A stretch of 64,000 nucleotides of DNA from Chlorokybus atmophyticus (lineage: Eukaryota; Plantae; Mesostigma and Chlorokybus algae). The notes beneath the pieces are model-generated. The model was given only the letters and a program-made list of their open reading frames with translations, was not told where the DNA came from and did no database searches. Of the stretch, positions 7,446-64,000 are shown piece after piece. Position numbers and translations under genes: made by a program. Numbering within the stretch: position 1 is the first letter of the stretch; the number at the start of each line of letters is the position of its first letter. The stretch covers positions 1,281,962 to 1,345,961 of the forward strand of contig RHPI01000810.1 in NCBI GenBank assembly GCA_009103225.1. Reading direction: 5' to 3'.

Positions 7446-8251
7446 ACTATTAAACTATGATTTAAAAATTCTAGAAATTTAAAGCATTTAATTGTATAAT
7501 ACAAGTATATAATATAGAGTTTAAAAGAATTAATCTTATAGCATGTAAATGTTGATTGATATTGTATACGTGTGGTTGATTACGTGAAAGTGATTATGGT
7601 CAATGCCATGGCAAGGAAATCCGAATATATATTAAGAATCAATTGATGTAAGGCTACAACTCTGTTCACTCGTACATCGTGGCTGCAGCAAATAAGGTGA
7701 AATTGTTAACTTCATTTATAGTACACATTTTCTTTATGTATAACATGTTCGGTGGTTAAAGTCGCTCCGGCTAAGTTCAACCACCAAGCTGCTTTCTCAA
7801 ATTTGGCTGACTTGGAGACGGCGTTGGCTGGAGAGACGGCGCAGCGGTAGCAGTTGGTAGTGGTAGTGGTTTTGAGACAATCTACTGCAAAGCCATTCTA
7901 AATGCATGTATCTGAGATTTCTATTGAGCATTATCCTTTCCATCTTTGCTTTGCTCTAGCTCTATTGTAATCTAAGCCTCCATGGTACATACTCTTTGAT
8001 ACACTCCTGCGTACGCGGCATTGCAGTCTACCCGACGAGACGTAGTGTGTGGAGCCCATCTGTCATCATGCAGTCGTGTCGCTTGTCAACCAGAAACCAC
8101 AAGGATACAAACAAGCAACTGTGCATCAGCACGTACTCCGTTTTCATCATCTGGCACGGCATATATTTACCAACGAGCCTGGCAACCACCAGCAATATTA
8201 CTCGAATATATCTACACATCAGCGTCAATGCTACAAAGTTTGAGGCAGTCA

Positions 8252-11200
8252 TTATCCCCTCTGTCTTCGCGATCGGCTGCCCCTTCTATCCTTCAATGCC
8301 ACCTCGCATGCGCGGGCAAGCCACCGGACAACCTCATCGGAAGAAGTGAGCATGGTTTCCAACAACTGCATCCCACCGTTGCGAGCAAGACATTCCGCAT
8401 ACTCGTTATCTCCCCTCTCTTCCAGCAGGCTTTGCAGGCTGCGTGCCACACTGCGCTGTACTCGTATGTCGGGGTGGTCGTGCGCCATGTCAACAAGGAG
8501 CGACACCATCACCTCATCCACCAACAAGCTGTCCGCTTCTACGCGGAACAATACCACATTGGCAAGTGCCTTTGCAACCTGGCAGGACAACATATGATGT
8601 CAGTGAATGCATGTTGGCGATCGCAGCAGCAAGTTCGACCCGAAACAACATGCTGTGTACCTGGCAGCGGATGTCCAAGCTGTTGGCAGTTGCCTTGCGC
8701 GCTAAAAGGGCGAGACCCCCACTGCGAGCAATGGCACTATGCACCTTGCCATTAGCCGCAAGCGTGCACACAGCCCCAAGAAGATGGTAGAGTGTGGTGT
8801 CATCCTTCAATGAAGAGCAGACGGCTATGAGCTTGTACAGGCCCGAGCCACGCACCAACCTTACCTGGGAAAACAAACAGTATATATGGGTCATGCAGAT
8901 TGCACAATCCAGACATAAACAAATATGGTGTCGTACCTGGCAAGCAGGGTGCAAACAAAGGTGTTCAATGGCCGCTGCAACAACTTGCCGCATTGCTGCA
9001 GTGGAGTCCGGCTTTGCAAGATATCGCAGAAAGAGCTTTGTCCCACCACCATTCACAATAAGCTCTTGGTGCTCTTCGCTGTAGGCCAGACTTGCCAATG
9101 TCCTCAGTGCAAGAACTGCAAGGTTCTTGTCTGATGACATCGCCAGTTTAAACAACACCGGTAGCCTGCACACACATGTGTCAATACACGCCCAATCACG
9201 CACGCGATACGCACACAGGAAAGGCGTGTACACGCAGCCGATACATACGCAATGCGCATAAAGCACCAGGGCTCGTACCTGACATTCTCAAACACTCTGC
9301 TGATGACAGCAAGAGTCCGCCTCAGATCATCGTTCTCTTCCGAGAGTGCGTGCACAAGGGACCCGTTATCCTGATCAATGGAAGAGAACCGTATGGGTTC
9401 ACGCTCTTGCAAGCGGCCACATGTTGTACAGGGAGCTTCTGCCCCATTGGGAAGAGACTGTCCATTGCGCTCCGCGATGTCGTGCGATGGCTCGGGTCCG
9501 ATTGAACTGCTGTTGGCGCTGCTGAGATGCGGTCGAGCCTGGCTCATGGGCGAAGTGTCTTGAGTGTCATCGATCATAGCAGCTGGAGAGTCCACCAAAC
9601 CAGAACGCTCGGCTGAATCGAGATCTGCACAAACCCTCAAACATGAGCCAAGCGCAGTATAAAGAGGCACATGTTCCAAAGCAACTGGTCTATGAAATGA
9701 CTCTTGAAATTGTGCATGTCACCTGGCAGCTCAAGAGGCGTGTGTTGGCCTGACAACGTCACGGCACTTGCATCAATAAAGTCCTCAAGTCCAACTTGCG
9801 TACAGGCGTCGCAGAAAGTATGTTGGGATGCATCTTGTGGGGCAACAGCCACACTCCTTTGCAGCAGGCTCGGGCCGGGAGCAGGGCAGCTCAATGGCAG
9901 ATGGATTGGCGGCGTGGGCGGACTCGTGCCACCCGGTCCCAGATATGGCGGCCTTTTGGAGGGCGTTCCGAGGTACGAATCCAATGCATCCAAAGAGCGG
10001 CTCGCATACTTCATCCTTGCCTGCGCATGAGCAACAACTTCAGTTGAGCACAAACCAACACATGCCAGTTCATTTAGTGTTTGGATCAGCTTTTAACTGT
10101 GTTGTAAGCGTGTCAACTGGCCTTGCGCTGGAAGGAAGGTTGTGAGGAAAGGCCAACACTGCTGGGCTCGATGTAGAAGAACGACGCAAGAGCTGCATCG
10201 TTCTCATACCCAAACCTCGCCTTCTCCTCATTGGTCTCTGAGGTGCTCGTTGTCTGTAAGCACACAAGCAGCTTATGAGTCAGCGTGAAGATCATGTGGA
10301 CATGCTTAACAGTGAACACAAGCGCAAGTACACAAGCTTCAGTACCTGGTCAGCAGCGCCTTGAGCCTCGTCCAACTGATTAGTAAACTGCGCAGCTGCA
10401 TGCTGCAATTGCGCTTGCAAATATTGCTGCAATGCGGCAAGACGCTCATGAAGCGCTTGCTGGATTGGCCGCATGGCCTGTGAAAAAAATGTAATGTGTT
10501 AGTGCTGTTGCATCTAAAAATAACTAGAGCTTCCAGCCACTTGTGGTGGCAGAAGCACAGTTGGCTTAACAGTAACGCGTTATGCACAGCTATCAGAGAT
10601 AGCAAAAGCAAGTGGCAGATTGCGCAAAGAAAGGCGACACAAAGCCATCTTACCGCATTGATACACAGCTGCCAGCTGTCACTCCCTCCGACATCCTGGA
10701 AGCTGCTGTCCAGAGCACAGCTGATGTCCGCCAGAAGGGCGGCCTGTGTTGACTGCAACCAACCATCACATTAGCTGTGGTTGCAAAATTAACTGTCTCA
10801 TGTCAACAGCACATCAACAGCTGTCAACCCTGCCAAGCATGAACTTGACAGCTGGACGACAAGCAGCACAGCGAAACGACAATGTCAACTCCAGTATCCT
10901 GCTCACACGCCGCTTTGCAACAACCACAGCCACAGGCAAGACGGCTGAGCAGGTAAAATGCCCACAATGCACGTTGACCAAGCCGCAGCTAGGGTTTGGG
11001 CCTGGCCAGACCAGCGAGCTGCTGGGGATCCTTCACCTCAATAGCGGCGGCGACGGGACTGGCGCACGCCGCCGCGTCTTGGCCGTCCGCGCCACCGTCA
11101 GCGGCGGACCGCAGCACATCGCCGTCGTGATCAACAGCTGGCGCCGCCTCCTCCTGCGGCGGCAGCGGCGACCGCAGCGCGCCCTCCAGGACCATGCCCA

Positions 11201-14120: not shown

Positions 14121-14121
14121 N
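14027..14121. other. Poly-C run ending in N: likely sequencing/scaffold-gap artefact
   Basis: About 94 consecutive C followed by n at 14121. Confidence 0.85.
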
Positions 14122-46813: not shown

Positions 46814-47029
46814 TAGGGGAGGCAATCTTATAACATATTCCGGCAGCGCTGCCAAGCAAGAGCACCCCGTTAAGTCCAACATCGTTAGAGCAGCACTCAT
46901 GGAAGGACTCGGGCAGCGCCGCCAAGCTGCCGCACCCACTCAGGTATAGCTCTTGAGGGGCAGCAAGCTTGTAAAACAAACCTGCAATGTTGCCAAGTTG
47001 TCGCACTCATTGTAATCTAGCTTTTGCAG
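46814..47029 (-). pseudogene. Relic of three plant-NLR-type 24-aa leucine-rich repeats, two frameshifts
   Basis: Across three frames: LQKLDYNECDNLATLQVCFTSL / QELYLSGCGSLAALPESF / ALTMLDLTGCSCLAALPEYVIRLPPL, fitting LxxLxLxxCxxLxxLPxx. Confidence 0.75.
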
Positions 47030-50560: not shown

Positions 50561-50603
50561 CCCAATGCATCAGTGGTGTGGTTGTGCAAGGAGTTTGATT
50601 GTT

Positions 50604-51540
<937 letters not shown>

Positions 51541-52019
51541 ACTCATGCACGCATGCATGACTGAGCTAGCTGTCAGTCATGTTAGCACGGTTTGCTGTAG
51601 TGTAGCATTTTGAAATCAGTTATGCGCGCACGCAGGTAGCTTAAGTACACGCGCACAGCCACGATCACCAATGTCCGCATGCACGCAGCCACACACCTGT
51701 TCGCATTGCATGTCCGCATGTACATGCGCACACAGAGAGACACACAGTGACGCACGCATCCTAGTATATGCTCAGGTTTTGAGTATGAGCACATCATGTC
51801 AACTCATATGCTGTATACTGCTCTCACACATTAAAACATACACATACATGCAGACTCAAGTGGACACATATGCAGGCACGCAACTTCAGCGTCAAACTAC
51901 TACAAGCGTGCAATCTCCATAATTTACAAAGCTTATTTGTAAAGCTTAAATACAAAGTCCCTTTCATCTCTTGACAAGGTGGAGTACACCCTGTCAAGGC
52001 GAGAGGAAGGCACCGCAAC

Positions 52020-53841
52020 TCATGCATTCTCTTCGATGGCATTCATCTCGTCCAATGCGTGTTGTGTTGAGGACGGTGCATCCGTTTTGTTATGTTTCTC
52101 ATACTGCAGCTCCAGGAACGTGTAGTAATCTGGCCGATTGTCCGCCTCAAGGTAATGTCGATTGCCAACAGGCCACTGCTTCCACAGCTCGAGCCGATAG
52201 TAGTTGGCAATGTCAATCGGCTCCACCATGAGTCGAAAAGTGTTGCCTCTCGCACACCAGACATTGGACTTGCTAAAAAAGTCAGCAGGCAACATGCCAT
52301 CCATGTGCCATTTGTAAGCTGTACGCCAGAAGTCCCGTACAACCCTATCAAGTTGGTGGAAAGGTCATATCAGTACTGATGAAGCTTTCAGTTGCACTGA
52401 GCTTGAAACTGCGATGCATGTCGTCTGACCTGCGTGCGCGCTCAACCTTTTTCAAGCGCTGTTCTTGCGGGCTGTCATCATCACCACGATACGTTCTGAA
52501 CTCGGCGTAGGAGTCCGCAGAGGTCCTCACAAAGGCTTGTATCGTATCCATGGCGTCTTGTACATCATTGCGCCACTGGTTGGTAAACTCTGTTTCATTT
52601 CTGCGCTGCTCGGCGACACTCAACACGCCCACTCTCGGTGAGTCCGCAGCGCTGCAAAGGTGAACGCACTTGAACTACGCATGTCATGTGGTAGGTCAAC
52701 AGGTCCACACTGCACGTTAGATGCCAATCAGGCCGCAATGCAAACCTATGTGGCATGGGCATGGGCTGCACGAAGGCCGGAACACTTCCCAAGTGCTTGA
52801 CGAGGGTGTCGTACCCAACCCAGGGATCCTATTGCATAAAGATAGGAACAGAAGACCACGAGTTACTGATGCAGAGATTGTGACATACCATGAAATACCA
52901 TTCTGACTGGATGCATGCTGCAAGCTCTTTCTTGTTCATCAAGAAGTGGGCACAGCTTGGAGCGAACGCACCACACTCTTTGAACTTGCCTGCTGATCGC
53001 CAAGGGTAAAGTAGCTAAATTTCCGGATCTGCGCAGGTACATGCTTTCTTGCTCCCGGGGGCCGGAAGATGACTGGTACCAACCACCCGGAAAGGTTCTG
53101 CTCCTCATAAACCTTGTTCAATACATTCGTGTACTCGTCGTGCGTCCCGGCCCCCATTTGATCATCTGCGGTGGGCTGCTTCAATGAAAACCGCTCATAA
53201 TGCTCATCACAGGCCACGATCACCTGAAGCATCATAAGACGAGATGAAAGCCTAAGCATGCAATGCTGTAATGCAGATGTGCCTGCTTACTATAGGGAAT
53301 TGTTGAATGTGAAAAGCTGGGAGTGTTGATGACAGCAACCATGCGCAAGGTTTACTATTGGGAATGATATGACAACCGGTACCTTTGTGCCATCGTTCAA
53401 CATCTGCCCAATAAAAGCCGGCCAGGACTGGTATGTATTTTTGTAGTCCACAATGACTTCGATATTGTGTTGTTGCAGTTGCTCGGCAAGCCTCCGCACA
53501 CGCTCTGCGTGTTGGTTGTCAAACTGGCAGTAGCTGATAAACACTGTCAACTTGGGTGCCGCAGACAGTGCCCCTGTAGCCTCTCGTCCCTGTCCGCTAT
53601 GTGCACGGCACACGCAAAACAAAATAAGCAAGGTGCATTTGCCGCAACAATTTAATGCATGCTTGCTCAAAAACCTGCATTGAACTTACGCAATAGCAGC
53701 GTGATTGACAGCGGCTGATTTCTTAAGGTGTTGAGCACTACCATGGTTGAGATATGTGTGGTTCCAGTAGCCAGCGCCAGTGACAATGGATGCAGCCGCA
53801 GCCAGCACTGCAGGCAGCCTCAGAGATACCAGTCCGCCCAT
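52020..53841 (-). CDS. 419-aa protein: hydrophobic N-terminal anchor + SEFIR-type TIR domain + EDS1/PAD4/SAG101-type EP domain (exons 53841-53690, 53596-53383, 53223-52990, 52828-52716, 52651-52430, 52344-52020)
   Basis: Exons total 1260 nt with matching phases and no internal stop; four GT-AG introns and one GC-AG. SEFIR/TIR: PKLTVFISYCQFDNQHAERVRRLAEQLQQHNIEVIVDY...WPAFIGQML..VIVACDEHY..GAGTHDEY..LVPVIF..VP..GYDTLVKHLG..P. EP: SYAEFR...KKVERARRVVRDFWRTAYKWHMDGMLPADFFSKSNVWCARGNTFRLMVEPIDIANYYR...RHYLEADNRPDYY, compared with recalled PAD4 LAKFWDTVIKMVETNELPFDF...LAEPLDIANFYK...GHYLEGNRPKRY. The ATG could lie further upstream. Confidence 0.85.
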
Positions 53842-54820
53842 CTCAAGACGCTTCTGCTTCTCCTAGTAAGCCAAGAGCGGTGCAGGCCAACGCATGGGCA
53901 GCAGCGAGCTCAGCTCCTGTTCAAGTTCAGCATTGGCCATGTCCAAACCACCAAGTGCTGTACAACTGTACAGCTGTAGAAGACCAAACGAAAGGGGTGG
54001 GGGGGTGGGGGGGGGGGTCACCAAGTGCTGTCAGCTGAGATGATTACGACAAAATGCACTATACATCTCTTCATCAGTTCCGACAACTTGCACTACAGCA
54101 AATGCATTGAAGTACGAAGGCATTGCTGTTACTGCAGCCAGTAAGACCCCGATGCCATTGACAACGACTTCACCTACTTGAATACTACAGCATGCTTGCC
54201 CTAAGTTAGAAACGCTGCTGCACACAGGAGGTATACTACTGGCTGGCTGCAAGAAGCACATGTTCATAGAATGTTGGAAGATGTGCGTCTGTCTGTGCGC
54301 GCGCCAGAGTGTGTGCATGCATGCGTCTGTCTACGCACACAGACGCACAGGCGCTCATCAGCATGTGCGGGGTACCTACACTGCTGATGCACAGACTGTG
54401 AAGTTCGTTGAGTTAGAGAAGCTTTCTGGAGGACCGGTTAAGCAGCAAAAGGGGCAACACGAGGGGAAGTAGTCCGTGGGGACACACAACGAAGCGGCGA
54501 GCTCACAAAGCCGTTAGCAATGGCGAGGCATTGCAGCGCACCTGGGCAAGCAGGCCGAACCCTAAGCAGTGCTTGCAGGATTTGTCGCCATGTACATCAG
54601 GGACACTGCGCCGTTGGCGTTTGCTAACCAGCGCCTCCCAGCATGGCGCTGACGTACGAAGCTGGCGCCTGCTGCGCTTTCTCACCCACCCCTCCCGGAA
54701 AGTCCCTTCCAGCCGGGCGGCGGACACCGCCGACACCGCCGTCTCCGACCGCCTCGCACTCCGTGCCAAAGTACACAACACGAGACAACTTTGCTCTGAA
54801 CGTGCATCTCTACTGTGCTA

Positions 54821-61255: not shown

Positions 61256-64000
61256 TCGTCAAGTTATCTGCAACTGCAGTTCCACTGGATGCCGCGGCAT
61301 GGTAAGCAGTGCGGTCTATGAGTTATGCAATCTATTGCTCTGACCAAAAGTCTCATAGGCACTGTCCAGTGTCTACGAGTCATGCACTCCATTGCTCTGA
61401 CCTAAAGTCTCATAGGCACTGTCCAGTGTCTACGACTTATGCATTCCTTTGCTGAGACCTAAGGACTCATAGGCACTGGACAGTGCTAGTCTGGTCTATG
61501 ACACAGCCATGCACGCGTGTGTCTTGCTTGTGATTCTTGATAGCGTGGTGATGTGGATTGGTGTTGATCGCTGGCGTGCTAACCAAAATTTGTCATCATA
61601 GATGGTGGACGAAGCAGTTGCAAGGGCGCACCGTGCACTTGACCTGGCAGTTGCCGCAAGCAGGTGGGCACCACCTATTCCCCATAGTCAACCTCTCGAG
61701 CCCAGCCAACCACCATCAGAGTCTGCTACGAAGAAGTGGCTGGATATCTACCTAAAGATTGTGACAGCCCTGGAAGATTCTAGTGTCCAGGTTGCTCTCG
61801 TCAACGAGATTATGAAACTCATCTTTGGCCAGATAAATTCTGTGGTCAAGCTGGCCTTGGAGGTTCCTTTTGAACAGGAGCAGTTGCGGGATGACATCGC
61901 CAGCCTCATAGGCGACACAATATCGCACAGCCCTGTCGCGGATGAGCTGCCGACAGACATTGCCGCCGTGGATAAACTGTTGGCCGCGCTCGGCATGCCT
62001 GTTCCTCAGCGCCTGACCGTCTGTCCCACATGCAAGTACTTGTTTGATGCACCTTATCCCACACTCAATGAAGATGACGAAGACTCGGACACGAGCGAGA
62101 CCAAGCAAAAAATGATTGATCGCCTTCGCAACACACCGTGCGGAGGGGGATGCGGCAGGGTTCGCAAAGAATGTTGCGACTTCTTGTACAATCGTGTAGG
62201 TGCCTGGCTCAGCGCCAAATTAGCTGTCCCTTCAATCGCTCACGACTATTTGGAGGAATGGCGCCACAAAAATGAGTGGTTGCACGTCCCTGTGGAACAA
62301 GTACCTGCTGCAAACACTGAGTACTGGCATGGTGCGAAGAAGCAGCATCACTGCAGCTTCTGGGACCCTCGCCACAAAATCAAGCTGCCTGTGTCCTGCG
62401 CATTCTGCCACCACATCCCGGATGTCGATTTGGAGCATCACAACGCAGGCGATCACGTGACATTTGAATGCTCAGGGTGCCACAAAACCAACCATCAGAT
62501 GGTACAGCAAGCTCTTGGCGACCCTCGCAACATAGCCCTGCTAATCCACGCCGACGGCTTCAGCTCAACAACCACTGTGAAGCACAGCTGCACCGTTGTC
62601 AGTGCCTCTGTGCTCAATGGCGGGAAGCGCATTTCCTCACAAGAGTCTTCCGTCATGCCTTTGCTCTTTGTTCCCACTGATCAGCTCCCAAACGGTGTGG
62701 ACAGTCTGGAGCCCTTTCTGGAACCACTGGTGCGTGACCTGGAGAACCTCTACTTGAACGGCTTCACTGTTCGTTATGGCCTCGATTCCAATCATGTCGA
62801 CAGCCGCGTGCTTGATCGACGACCAGGTAATGACTGGGTTATAACATGTTTTGTCACCTATATCACCCCAAGTCTCATAGGCACTGTCCAGAGTCTACAA
62901 CTTATGCAGTCCATTTTTGTGTATGCTAAAGTCTCATAGGCACTGTTCAGTGGCTGCGACTTGGTTATAGCATATCTGCCTTCTTGCGGTCTATGAGACT
63001 GTCATAGGCTGCACTGCCCAGTGCGGCCTATTACAGTCTCTATCAGACTGGTTGTGAGATACTGATGTTGACTTCATTGCAGGTCAAGAGATAACGCTGC
63101 GGGTAGTGCTGTGGGCATGGACGGGTGACCAGCCAGCGCAATGTGAGATAGGCCAGTTTAAGAATGGAGGCCTCGTCCCCTGCCGGCGTTGTCTCCTCAA
63201 AGCCACTCAGCACCAAGTGCCCCGGCGTGCTGAGCAGGGTGAAGATACTACGAGGACACGTACAGACCATTTTTATGGTGACAATCGCTATTACTGCCGC
63301 CATCCCCCAGCAGAGAGAGCAGCAAAGGATGCGTTCGACAACGCGTGCATGGTGGACTCACTCGATGGCCAAAACCGGAAAGAAAAATCAATGGAGTGCG
63401 GCATCACAGGGAAATCTCCACTCTGGCGGCTGTGGCATCTGTATGAGTTTAACCCTTGCCGTGACTTGGTCTATGACACGATGCACCTGTTGCTGGAGGG
63501 GCTTTGCAAAAGTTTCGTGCACAGTACGCTGGGTGCAGACAGTTCAAAGCATGTCGAAGACATTGCCAAGGTGGAGCGCAGGCTGTCTCAGATGCGCATA
63601 TCACGCCCCATGGACTTGAAGAGCAAACGTTTCCCAAGAGGCATCAGCAAGCACCTGGCTTGGTTCAAGGCCCAGGACTTGCAGATGTTCGTGCAGTATG
63701 CTGTGCCATACGCTGTGTCCGATCTGGTAGACGAAGCAACCAGAGACGTCAGCTTTGCGCTTCACTTGCTCATCCGCATCTTCTTCCACAACTCTCGCCT
63801 ACATGGCTGGACTGCGGAGCTGTTGGAACTTGCTGACGCTCTTTTGAAATATTGGAGGGTCTACTCGGAGGACCTGTTTGGCACCAACAAAAGGCCCAAC
63901 GAGCATGTGGCCGGTGCCGGTCACATTCTGGAGGACATCATCTGGCACGGGAGTCATGATGTGTACTGGTGTTTTGTGCAAGAGCGCACTGTGTCCAACT
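60695..64000 (+). CDS. CMC/EnSpm (CACTA-like) DDE transposase, spliced, open to the window edge
   Basis: Large exon 61602-62826 with VCPTC and DPRNIALLIHADGF...VMPLLFVP..DSLEPFLEPLVRDLENLYLNGF (Transposase_21-like). Exon 63083-64000 is stop-free: TLRVVLWAWTGDQPA, PCRRC, YDTMHLLLEG, FKAQDLQMF, GSHDVYWCFVQERT (DUF4218-like). The D-D-E candidates are all present. The 5' exons (60695 onward) are tentative. Confidence 0.88.
61314..61490 (+). repeat. Three ~57-bp tandem units (core AGTCTCATAGGCACTGTCCAG) in a transposase intron; same motif at 62870-63010
   Basis: CTCATAGGCACTG occurs at about 61352, 61409 and 61466, and again at about 62874 and 62934. Confidence 0.85.

Follow-up and report, generated by a model that had tools for sequence, protein, structure and literature searches.

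The window analysed here is a 64,000-nucleotide stretch of the Chlorokybus atmophyticus genome (GenBank assembly GCA_009103225.1, contig RHPI01000810.1, positions 1,281,962 to 1,345,961). On its minus strand, at 51848-54754, lies the gene Chrsp103S01043. We find this to be a real, spliced and expressed gene, whose ~409-residue chain combines a weakly hydrophobic N-terminus, a SEFIR domain, a linker and a shortened EP domain, the domain otherwise known from EDS1, PAD4 and SAG101. By sequence and predicted fold, the C-terminal domain is an EP domain; the sequence of the N-terminal half identifies it as a SEFIR domain of bacterial type, within the TIR superfamily. Chlorokybus is a streptophyte alga (Chlorokybophyceae), and papers published from 2019 to 2026 place the EDS1 family and the EP domain in seed plants only, treating TIR signalling in non-seed lineages as unexplained.

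The initial annotation of this DNA had proposed that the EP domain reaches far beyond seed plants. EP homology in a streptophyte alga stands, by profile and by structure, but the domain is a shortened one that lacks a lipase partner, database pipelines already assign PF18117 to Chlorokybus EP proteins, and a preprint of 2026 refers to "short EP-like sequences" of green algae. Our literature search found no paper joining Chlorokybus with an EP claim. The new elements are the lineage and the architectures in which this true EP domain occurs, its structural support, and a bacterial-type SEFIR partner that we have not found described. Residue numbers below follow the annotated protein of 415 amino acids (P0001).

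The C-terminal domain matches EP in sequence and predicted fold

The last exon alone (window 52023-52343, minus strand) matches the Pfam family EDS1_EP (PF18117) with an E-value of 1.5e-9 and 38.3 bits against a gathering cutoff of 23.1 bits, which is far beyond chance. The whole spliced protein scores 39.6 bits against the same cutoff, and relatives score up to 65.7 bits, with E-values to 1e-18. When the last exon was compared by phmmer with all Protein Data Bank (PDB) sequences, the only meaningful matches were PAD4, EDS1 and SAG101 (5e-5 to 0.06). The C-terminus had been read in the initial annotation as carrying the EP landmarks in order; that reading is exact on the minus strand, and the motifs FW, LPxDF, W, EPxDIANYY, HY and RPxxY follow one another as in EDS1 and PAD4.

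An AlphaFold2 model, built with a 66-sequence alignment, places residues 245–415 at a predicted local distance difference test (pLDDT) score of 94–98, and a model of the EP part alone has a pLDDT of 95.3 and a predicted template modelling score of 0.90. In Foldseek searches of the PDB, the top 13 matches were all PAD4, EDS1 or SAG101. Using VIA-align, the model superimposed on OsEDS1 with Z 19.6 and a root-mean-square deviation (rmsd) of 1.6 Å over 157 residues, and on AtPAD4 with Z 17.4 and an rmsd of 1.6 Å over 152 residues at 27% identity. A search independent of Foldseek, against 48,161 PDB representatives, gave OsPAD4 (Z 17.2), AtPAD4 (16.5) and AtEDS1 (15.8), the next chain having Z 7.1; EDS1 and PAD4 were the only chains above Z 8. 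Altogether, the all-helical fold is shared with the seed-plant domain at Z 15.8–19.6 and an rmsd of 1.6–2.2 Å over 152–161 residues, at 19–27% identity. The profile and fold comparisons proposed in the initial annotation thus both return the EDS1 family.

Among AlphaFold Database clusters, the EP-only model matched plant EDS1-family EP domains at template modelling (TM) scores of 0.70–0.78 by query. Three further clusters of small proteins (C5KH53, A0A7S0DJB3 and A0A1D3CUH7, one of them labelled a transmembrane protein) matched at TM scores of 0.55–0.60 by query; from the models, they could be remote EP-like proteins from beyond the green plants or simply helical bundles of similar shape. Whole-protein AlphaFold Database matches to bacterial TIR proteins were set aside, as their rmsd is meaningless. 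An ESM Atlas feature search with the last exon gave just unrelated kinase-like clusters, below the recognition threshold.

The algal domain is not a full-length EP: Pfam matches only profile positions 27–122 of 211, where the full domain has ~240 residues. The region that forms the nucleotide pocket of EDS1-PAD4, as delimited by the residues named in the literature, is retained within the part equivalent to PAD4 289–464. Unlike the seed-plant domain, the algal EP has a five-residue insertion after YYR and is fused to a SEFIR domain and a hydrophobic N-terminus. Unlike the EDS1 family proper, the protein has no N-terminal class-3-lipase-like α/β-hydrolase domain, Pfam giving no Lipase_3 or hydrolase match anywhere in it. 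Across 58 relatives, Arg378 (the R of the RP motif) is invariant, and E349, P350, A354, Y372 and P379 are nearly so. The position of AtEDS1 R493 holds an arginine in 24 of the 58, including seed-plant sequences and three short Chlorokybus paralogues (P0013, P0026 and P0040), and is a tyrosine throughout the SEFIR-EP clade.

The N-terminal half is related to bacterial SEFIR defence proteins

Residues 63–200 match Pfam SEFIR (PF08357) with 41 bits against a cutoff of 23, and TIR_2 with 37.7 bits against a cutoff of 28; the plant-type TIR family PF01582 had no Pfam match in the protein. The PADLOC model for bSEFIR matched with 74.4 bits (E 3.6e-21). A tblastn search of plasmids returned bacterial SEFIR proteins from Deinococcus, Bacillus and Nostoc, and BLASTP aligned residues 69–272 with a Deinococcus SEFIR protein at 27% identity (E 8e-13). 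When the SEFIR domains of three Chlorokybus paralogues and five bacterial proteins are aligned, 14 columns are invariant, all of them kept in Chrsp103S01043, among them the FISY strand, Asp101 and G146-x-G148-x3-E152, in which E152 is the putative catalytic residue. The predicted fold of this part resembles the TIR domains of SPARTA, SIGIRR, RRS1/RPS4 and TIR-STING (Z ~9–10).

The bSEFIR proteins are bacterial anti-phage proteins (PADLOC PDLC03957; Millman et al. 2022). Bacterial SEFIR has been described as a one-protein system whose N-terminal SEFIR domain depletes NAD+, yielding ADP-ribose (ADPR) and nicotinamide (bioRxiv 10.1101/2024.02.11.579819), and the bacterial defence needs an aspartate at the SEFIR-SEFIR interface (D40), whose counterpart is conserved in Chrsp103S01043. 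The algal protein shares with bSEFIR a single-chain plan, an N-terminal SEFIR domain followed by a second, presumably sensing, C-terminal domain. It differs in that the C-terminal domain is unrelated and the gene is a eukaryotic one of seven exons.

The PADLOC match seemed to overrun the SEFIR domain, which raised the C-terminal domain of bSEFIR as a candidate EP homologue. We rejected this candidate: Pfam found no EP match in the two bacterial SEFIR proteins scanned, hhalign, with the EP profile set against the aligned C-terminal regions of three bSEFIR proteins, gave a probability of 0.3%, and the BLASTP extension beyond SEFIR into the Deinococcus protein covers only the linker.

The animal SEFIR domains of the IL-17 receptor and Act1 offer a different comparison. 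They share the SEFIR fold, and ACT1 and IL-17R assemblies are among the fold matches of the algal domain, but they are non-catalytic adaptors, and the algal sequence is closer to the bacterial family. On this model, SEFIR in Chrsp103S01043 would be a non-catalytic homotypic interaction domain and EP a plain scaffold, the two tethering partners at the membrane with no nucleotide chemistry or sensing. The conserved interface aspartate suits such a role, as does the replacement of the basic EDS1/PAD4 pocket residues detailed below. We nevertheless consider a pure adaptor rather unlikely, since the domain is closest to a bacterial family reported to cleave NAD+, G-x-G-x3-E is invariant across bacteria and the alga, and EP recurs with catalytic-type TIR domains and with genes for TIR-type nucleotide-binding leucine-rich-repeat proteins (TIR-NLRs).

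Residues 2–20 are hydrophobic and may form a membrane anchor, as their composition suggests. A clearer N-terminal transmembrane helix occurs in many relatives (Kyte-Doolittle 2.0–2.5).

Exon structure and transcript support

Chrsp103S01043 has seven exons, six of them coding, and six introns, and its reading frame is intact (Table 1). Public RNA contigs mapped to the window, from three samples in two studies under a single organism label, indicate transcription in all three samples, and all six introns (five in the coding region and one in the 5' untranslated region, UTR) are seen in them as joints. The 85-nucleotide GT-AG intron that the initial annotation had spliced out before the last exon is borne out on the minus strand, its joint being present in RNA contigs of three runs. 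The length of 419 amino acids given there is not: the RNA supports 409 amino acids and the public annotation gives 415. The annotated protein is six linker residues longer because its GT donor lies 18 nucleotides downstream of the GC donor that the RNA contigs use (window 52972-52989).

Table 1. Features of Chrsp103S01043 in the window (residues numbered as in P0001).
Feature	Position	Strand	Evidence or remark
5'-UTR exon (upstream limit is a minimum)	54542..54754	-	loose end of RNA contigs beyond 53919 maps uniquely to 54545-54574; GT donor 54541-54540
5'-UTR intron, 625 nt, GT-AG	53917..54541	-	RNA contigs
Exon: remaining 5' UTR, ATG at 53841-53839, codons 1-50; residues 2-20 hydrophobic	53690..53916	-	translation
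Intron, 93 nt, GT-AG	53597..53689	-	RNA joint, 3 runs
Exon: first half of SEFIR/TIR-like domain (FISY 70-73, D101)	53383..53596	-	Pfam TIR_2 and SEFIR matches on the exon; residues invariant with bacterial SEFIR
Intron, 159 nt, GT-AG	53224..53382	-	RNA joint
Exon: second half of SEFIR, G146-x-G148-x3-E152; E152 codon 53136-53134	52990..53223	-	alignment; BLASTP to Deinococcus SEFIR protein
Intron, 161 nt, GC-AG	52829..52989	-	RNA joint skipping 161 nt, 2 runs
Exon: SEFIR-EP linker; low pLDDT	52746..52828	-	translation, RNA contigs
Intron, 94 nt, GT-AG	52652..52745	-	RNA joint, 3 runs
Exon: predicted first EP helices (~residues 245-308), including SYAEFR, the GYYDSFK counterpart	52430..52651	-	AlphaFold2 pLDDT 94-98; aligns structurally with PAD4 from residue 289/293 on
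Intron, 85 nt, GT-AG	52345..52429	-	RNA joint, 3 runs
Last exon, EP core: FW, LPxDFF, EPIDIANYY, HY, RPDYY; stop codon 52022-52020	52020..52344	-	Pfam EDS1_EP; PDB phmmer
E349 codon (last exon)	52223-52221	-	
Y381 codon (last exon), position of AtEDS1 R493	52127-52125	-	
3' UTR	51848..52019	-	RNA contigs stop at 51848

At window 53550 and 53100-53221, some RNA contigs agree with the SEFIR exons up to a point and continue as sequence that the window lacks; one contig has 13 mismatches. Paralogues with near-identical SEFIR exons are the most likely source of such transcripts.

The gene belongs to the alga

Just downstream of the 3' end of the gene lies an uninterrupted (GA)n microsatellite of ~940 bp (window 50600-51540) with a single N at 51540; a second lone N stands at 14121. 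Such a tract might mark a mis-join, and a plant-type domain in an alga might reflect seed-plant contamination or a chance or convergent similarity, so that the finding would be an artefact. This explanation is effectively refuted. The last exon, searched against 1.84 billion representative proteins, retrieved a protein identical to the product of its gene (EukProt/JGI Chlorokybus atmophyticus Chlat1 626, Chrsp103S01043), which bears out the algal host supposed in the initial annotation. Seed-plant contamination, named there as a possible refutation, was tested with a negative outcome and is excluded, because the transcript is found in RNA runs labelled Chlorokybus and matches the window, at least eight other scaffolds of the Chlorokybus genome carry paralogues, the protein has no lipase domain and only 19–27% identity to seed-plant EP, and the tetranucleotide composition to the right of the (GA)n tract correlates with that of the rest of the window at r = 0.79–0.89. 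A run assigned to a second organism also contains a DNA-like contig that retains the intron and differs at four positions. The Pfam E-values of the relatives, and structural Z-scores of 16–20 against 7 for unrelated folds, speak against chance or convergence.

Elsewhere in the window, a 445-residue open reading frame (ORF) at 61602-62939 on the plus strand, ~8 kb upstream of the gene, has a sub-threshold Transposase_21 match (tnp2/CACTA type; 23 bits against a cutoff of 28.6), and Pfam scans of the nine longest ORFs in window 43–64 kb found nothing beyond this. A short leucine-rich repeat (LRR)-like match at 46902-47003 on the minus strand aligns with the LRR region of the Chlorokybus paralogue P0003 (E 3e-4).

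Relatives in Chlorokybus and in environmental sequences

The representative-protein search with the last exon gave 82 matches, including one spurious bacterial repeat protein (P0025). Within Chlorokybus, the closest paralogue, P0086, is 82% identical to Chrsp103S01043 and has the same SEFIR-EP order behind a possible transmembrane segment; by part, the identity is 90% in SEFIR, 85% in EP and 73% in the N-terminus. Other paralogues differ in what accompanies EP. P0003 is an LRR-SEFIR-EP protein, P0004 carries an EP, a canonical TIR domain (PF01582) and a second EP, and P0013 (on the same scaffold, Chrsp103), P0026 and P0040 are short proteins with a transmembrane helix and an EP. Many paralogues are scattered, some with fragmentary models, of which P0002 and P0087 are examples.

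Most other relatives are transcriptome or metagenome proteins of ~180–260 amino acids with an N-terminal transmembrane helix and a short EP, and the short form prevails among distant relatives, algal and environmental, of which there are dozens. Outside Chlorokybus, a single named source is not a seed plant, the trebouxiophyte chlorophyte Elliptochloris bilobata; cluster look-ups named just Chlorokybus, Elliptochloris and Taxus. Word-indexed homologue searches returned only Chlorokybus paralogues and environmental proteins, and the taxon range of the family is thus poorly defined. In a maximum-likelihood tree of 58 EP domains, which has a weak backbone and is unrooted (midpoint rooting serves for drawing only), the seed-plant EPs form one well-supported clade among at least ten algal or environmental lineages, and the Chlorokybus SEFIR-EP clade groups with the Elliptochloris sequence. 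A strongly supported clade of P0054, P0070, P0073, P0067, P0056 and P0071 has a long insertion before the RP motif, and P0054, from a JGI metagenome fragment, carries a DHISICKP-type α/β-hydrolase-like motif N-terminal to its EP.

The abundance of copies raises the question of decay. Chrsp103S01043 might be a lineage-specific, transposon-spread duplicate in which EP is a functionless truncated remnant, a history that would fit the truncated EP, the scattered paralogues with fragmentary models and the CACTA-type transposase ORF upstream. We judge this very improbable: the frame is intact over six coding exons and transcribed in three samples, the short EP form is widespread in distant relatives with an invariant Arg378, and AlphaFold2 confidence for EP is very high.

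Genes for TIR proteins adjoin EP genes at two loci. In JGI metagenome 3300060284, contig Ga0590114_0002527 (L006:1-20663) has the transmembrane-EP gene P0088 between a TIR-NB-ARC gene (~8 kb away) and a TIR-NB-ARC-LRR gene (~4 kb away), whose TIR domains are ~44% identical to that of Chlorokybus P0004. In GCA_030012885.1, contig JASCQV010002970.1 (L001:1469-6732), a TIR gene lies 4 kb upstream of the EP gene P0023 (EDS1_EP 60.5 bits), the product of which has a longer C-terminal helical extension than the Chlorokybus-type EP. A further EP protein with a transmembrane helix, P0064 (EDS1_EP 29.4 bits), is encoded on the 96-kb scaffold_24 of ENA ERZ23498485 (L004:10001-10561). This scaffold is AT-rich (32% GC) and dense with long intron-free ORFs, none above Pfam threshold, and could derive from a giant virus or a compact protist genome.

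A possible lipase-EP gene in Elliptochloris

At a locus of Elliptochloris bilobata (GCA_040144335.1, contig JALJOU010000074.1; L013:6800-10630), lipase-like exons lie on the same strand as the EP exons, directly upstream of and collinear with them, in the order seen in the EDS1 family. The stretch at 6801-7331 matches Lipase_3 with 26.6 bits against a cutoff of 22 and has a GHSLGG elbow. The stretch at 7595-7813 finds its strongest PDB-wide match in the lipase-like domain of rice PAD4 (E 3.2e-8), with EDS1 and AtPAD4 next. Unannotated DNA at 9283-9600 encodes an RPFG...DNP...MLY-type stretch and an SEH motif, its best match being rice PAD4 300–337, a weak one (E 1.1). The EP exons occupy 9899-10625. 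The lipase-like exons also carry an RHDVVPR motif. A tblastn search with a 643-residue EDS1-family protein gave four collinear same-strand matches (residues 10–147, 150–198, 282–318 and 451–502). The public annotation has two models here, of 213 and 142 amino acids (the latter the EP gene), and leaves one EDS1-like exon unannotated; UniRef names the Elliptochloris protein an EDS1 EP domain-containing protein. From these matches, the locus looks like one EDS1/PAD4-like lipase-EP gene split by annotation, and a full EDS1-type lipase-EP gene is thus possibly present in a chlorophyte alga.

A proposed sensor-effector arrangement

In seed plants, EP is the receptor for ADPR-derived nucleotides made by TIR proteins, R493 and H476 of EDS1 and K379/K380 of PAD4 being important. 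The EDS1 family proper is characterised by exclusive heterodimers, by binding of pRib-AMP/ADP or ADPr-ATP produced by TIR proteins, and by recruitment of ADR1 and NRG1. By analogy with bacterial systems, we lean towards a sensor-effector reading of Chrsp103S01043, with a little more confidence for than against: EP would be a ligand-sensing or dimerising module that controls a SEFIR effector of the NAD+-cleaving kind. EP is favoured as the sensor and SEFIR as the output because EP sits where bSEFIR, TIR-STING, Thoeris ThsA and SPARTA carry their sensing domain. TIR-STING, ThsA (SLOG-SIR2) and SPARTA (TIR-APAZ) likewise place a sensing domain and an NAD+-cleaving domain, of the TIR superfamily or SIR2, on one chain, and the TIR domains of TIR-STING and SPARTA are among the best fold matches of the algal N-domain. 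Unlike EP, their sensor domains are of other, non-homologous kinds, and the firing by oligomerisation that is known for them would be carried over to the alga by inference. Also in support of this reading, EP is repeatedly fused to or adjacent to TIR-superfamily modules, in LRR-SEFIR-EP and EP-TIR-EP proteins and beside TIR-NLR genes.

In such an arrangement, sensing or pairing would fall to EP and the output to SEFIR. The trigger could be a nucleotide, whether made by TIR or TIR-NLR proteins of the alga or by SEFIR itself; alternatively, it could be pairing with a second EP protein, for example one of the transmembrane-EP paralogues that keep the arginine at the EDS1-Arg493 position. Either would bring SEFIR domains together by oligomerisation, and the gathered domains would cleave NAD+ at the membrane, giving an output of an immune or cell-death type. 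The seed-plant link from TIR to EDS1 would then have descended from an older algal coupling of TIR or SEFIR to EP.

Several observations weigh against this proposal. The algal protein covers AtPAD4 289–464 of 541 and then ends, ~75 C-terminal residues being absent. The position of AtEDS1 R493 is Tyr381 in Chrsp103S01043 and that of H476 is Leu359, while PAD4 K379/K380 align with Asn335/Val336 and R420 with Tyr381. With these basic residues replaced, a pocket of the pRib-ADP type found in seed plants is not conserved in this paralogue, and the replaced residues, together with the missing C-terminal helices, are in alignment and model the main arguments against a seed-plant-like ligand pocket here. 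The SEFIR part is modelled with only moderate confidence (pLDDT 50–85, with a disordered loop at 130–156), and the catalytic role of E152 is putative. Residues 2–20 have a borderline 19-residue Kyte-Doolittle mean of 1.73 and low AlphaFold2 confidence. The adjacency of TIR and EP genes is an observation on two individual loci. NADase activity, ligand binding and pairing of EP domains are predictions here.

A variant would make the two domains generator and receptor in cis, SEFIR producing an ADPR-derived messenger that the EP of its own or a neighbouring chain binds, as a feed-forward switch. It shares the domain evidence of the sensor-effector reading, and a Rosetta-stone argument favours it, an NAD+-cleaving TIR-superfamily domain being fused to the reader of TIR products in seed plants. 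We regard it as distinctly unlikely. The known bSEFIR products, ADPR and nicotinamide, suit a depletion system better than a signalling one, the pocket residues have been replaced, and fused sensor-effectors have more precedents than fused generator-receptors.

Implications for EP evolution and TIR signalling

Taken with the sensor-effector reading, the relatives permit a broader proposal, which we put forward tentatively and hold to be possible though doubtful. EP may be an ancient ligand sensor of the green lineage, present in Streptophyta and Chlorophyta and mounted on swappable effectors (a transmembrane helix, a SEFIR NADase, TIR, LRR-SEFIR and the lipase-like domain of Elliptochloris). 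Signalling from TIR to EP, and perhaps the lipase-EP fusion, would then have arisen hundreds of millions of years before land plants, and the Chlorokybus SEFIR-EP would combine receptor and effector for TIR-made nucleotides in a single working chain. Judging from the split Elliptochloris locus, algal EDS1-like genes can escape surveys that demand a lipase and an EP within the same annotated protein.

By sequence and predicted fold, a bona fide EP is expressed in an early-diverging streptophyte alga, fused to a TIR-superfamily domain of the predicted NAD+-cleaving type. Plant immunologists ask by what route TIR and TIR-NLR proteins in algae, mosses and ferns could signal if EDS1, PAD4 and SAG101 are missing there, and concrete algal proteins now allow a test of whether EP sensing of NAD-derived nucleotides is ancestral. 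SEFIR-EP would link plant TIR-EDS1 signalling to the sensor-NADase logic of bacterial defence, and the reading of TIR immune signals outside seed plants becomes testable.

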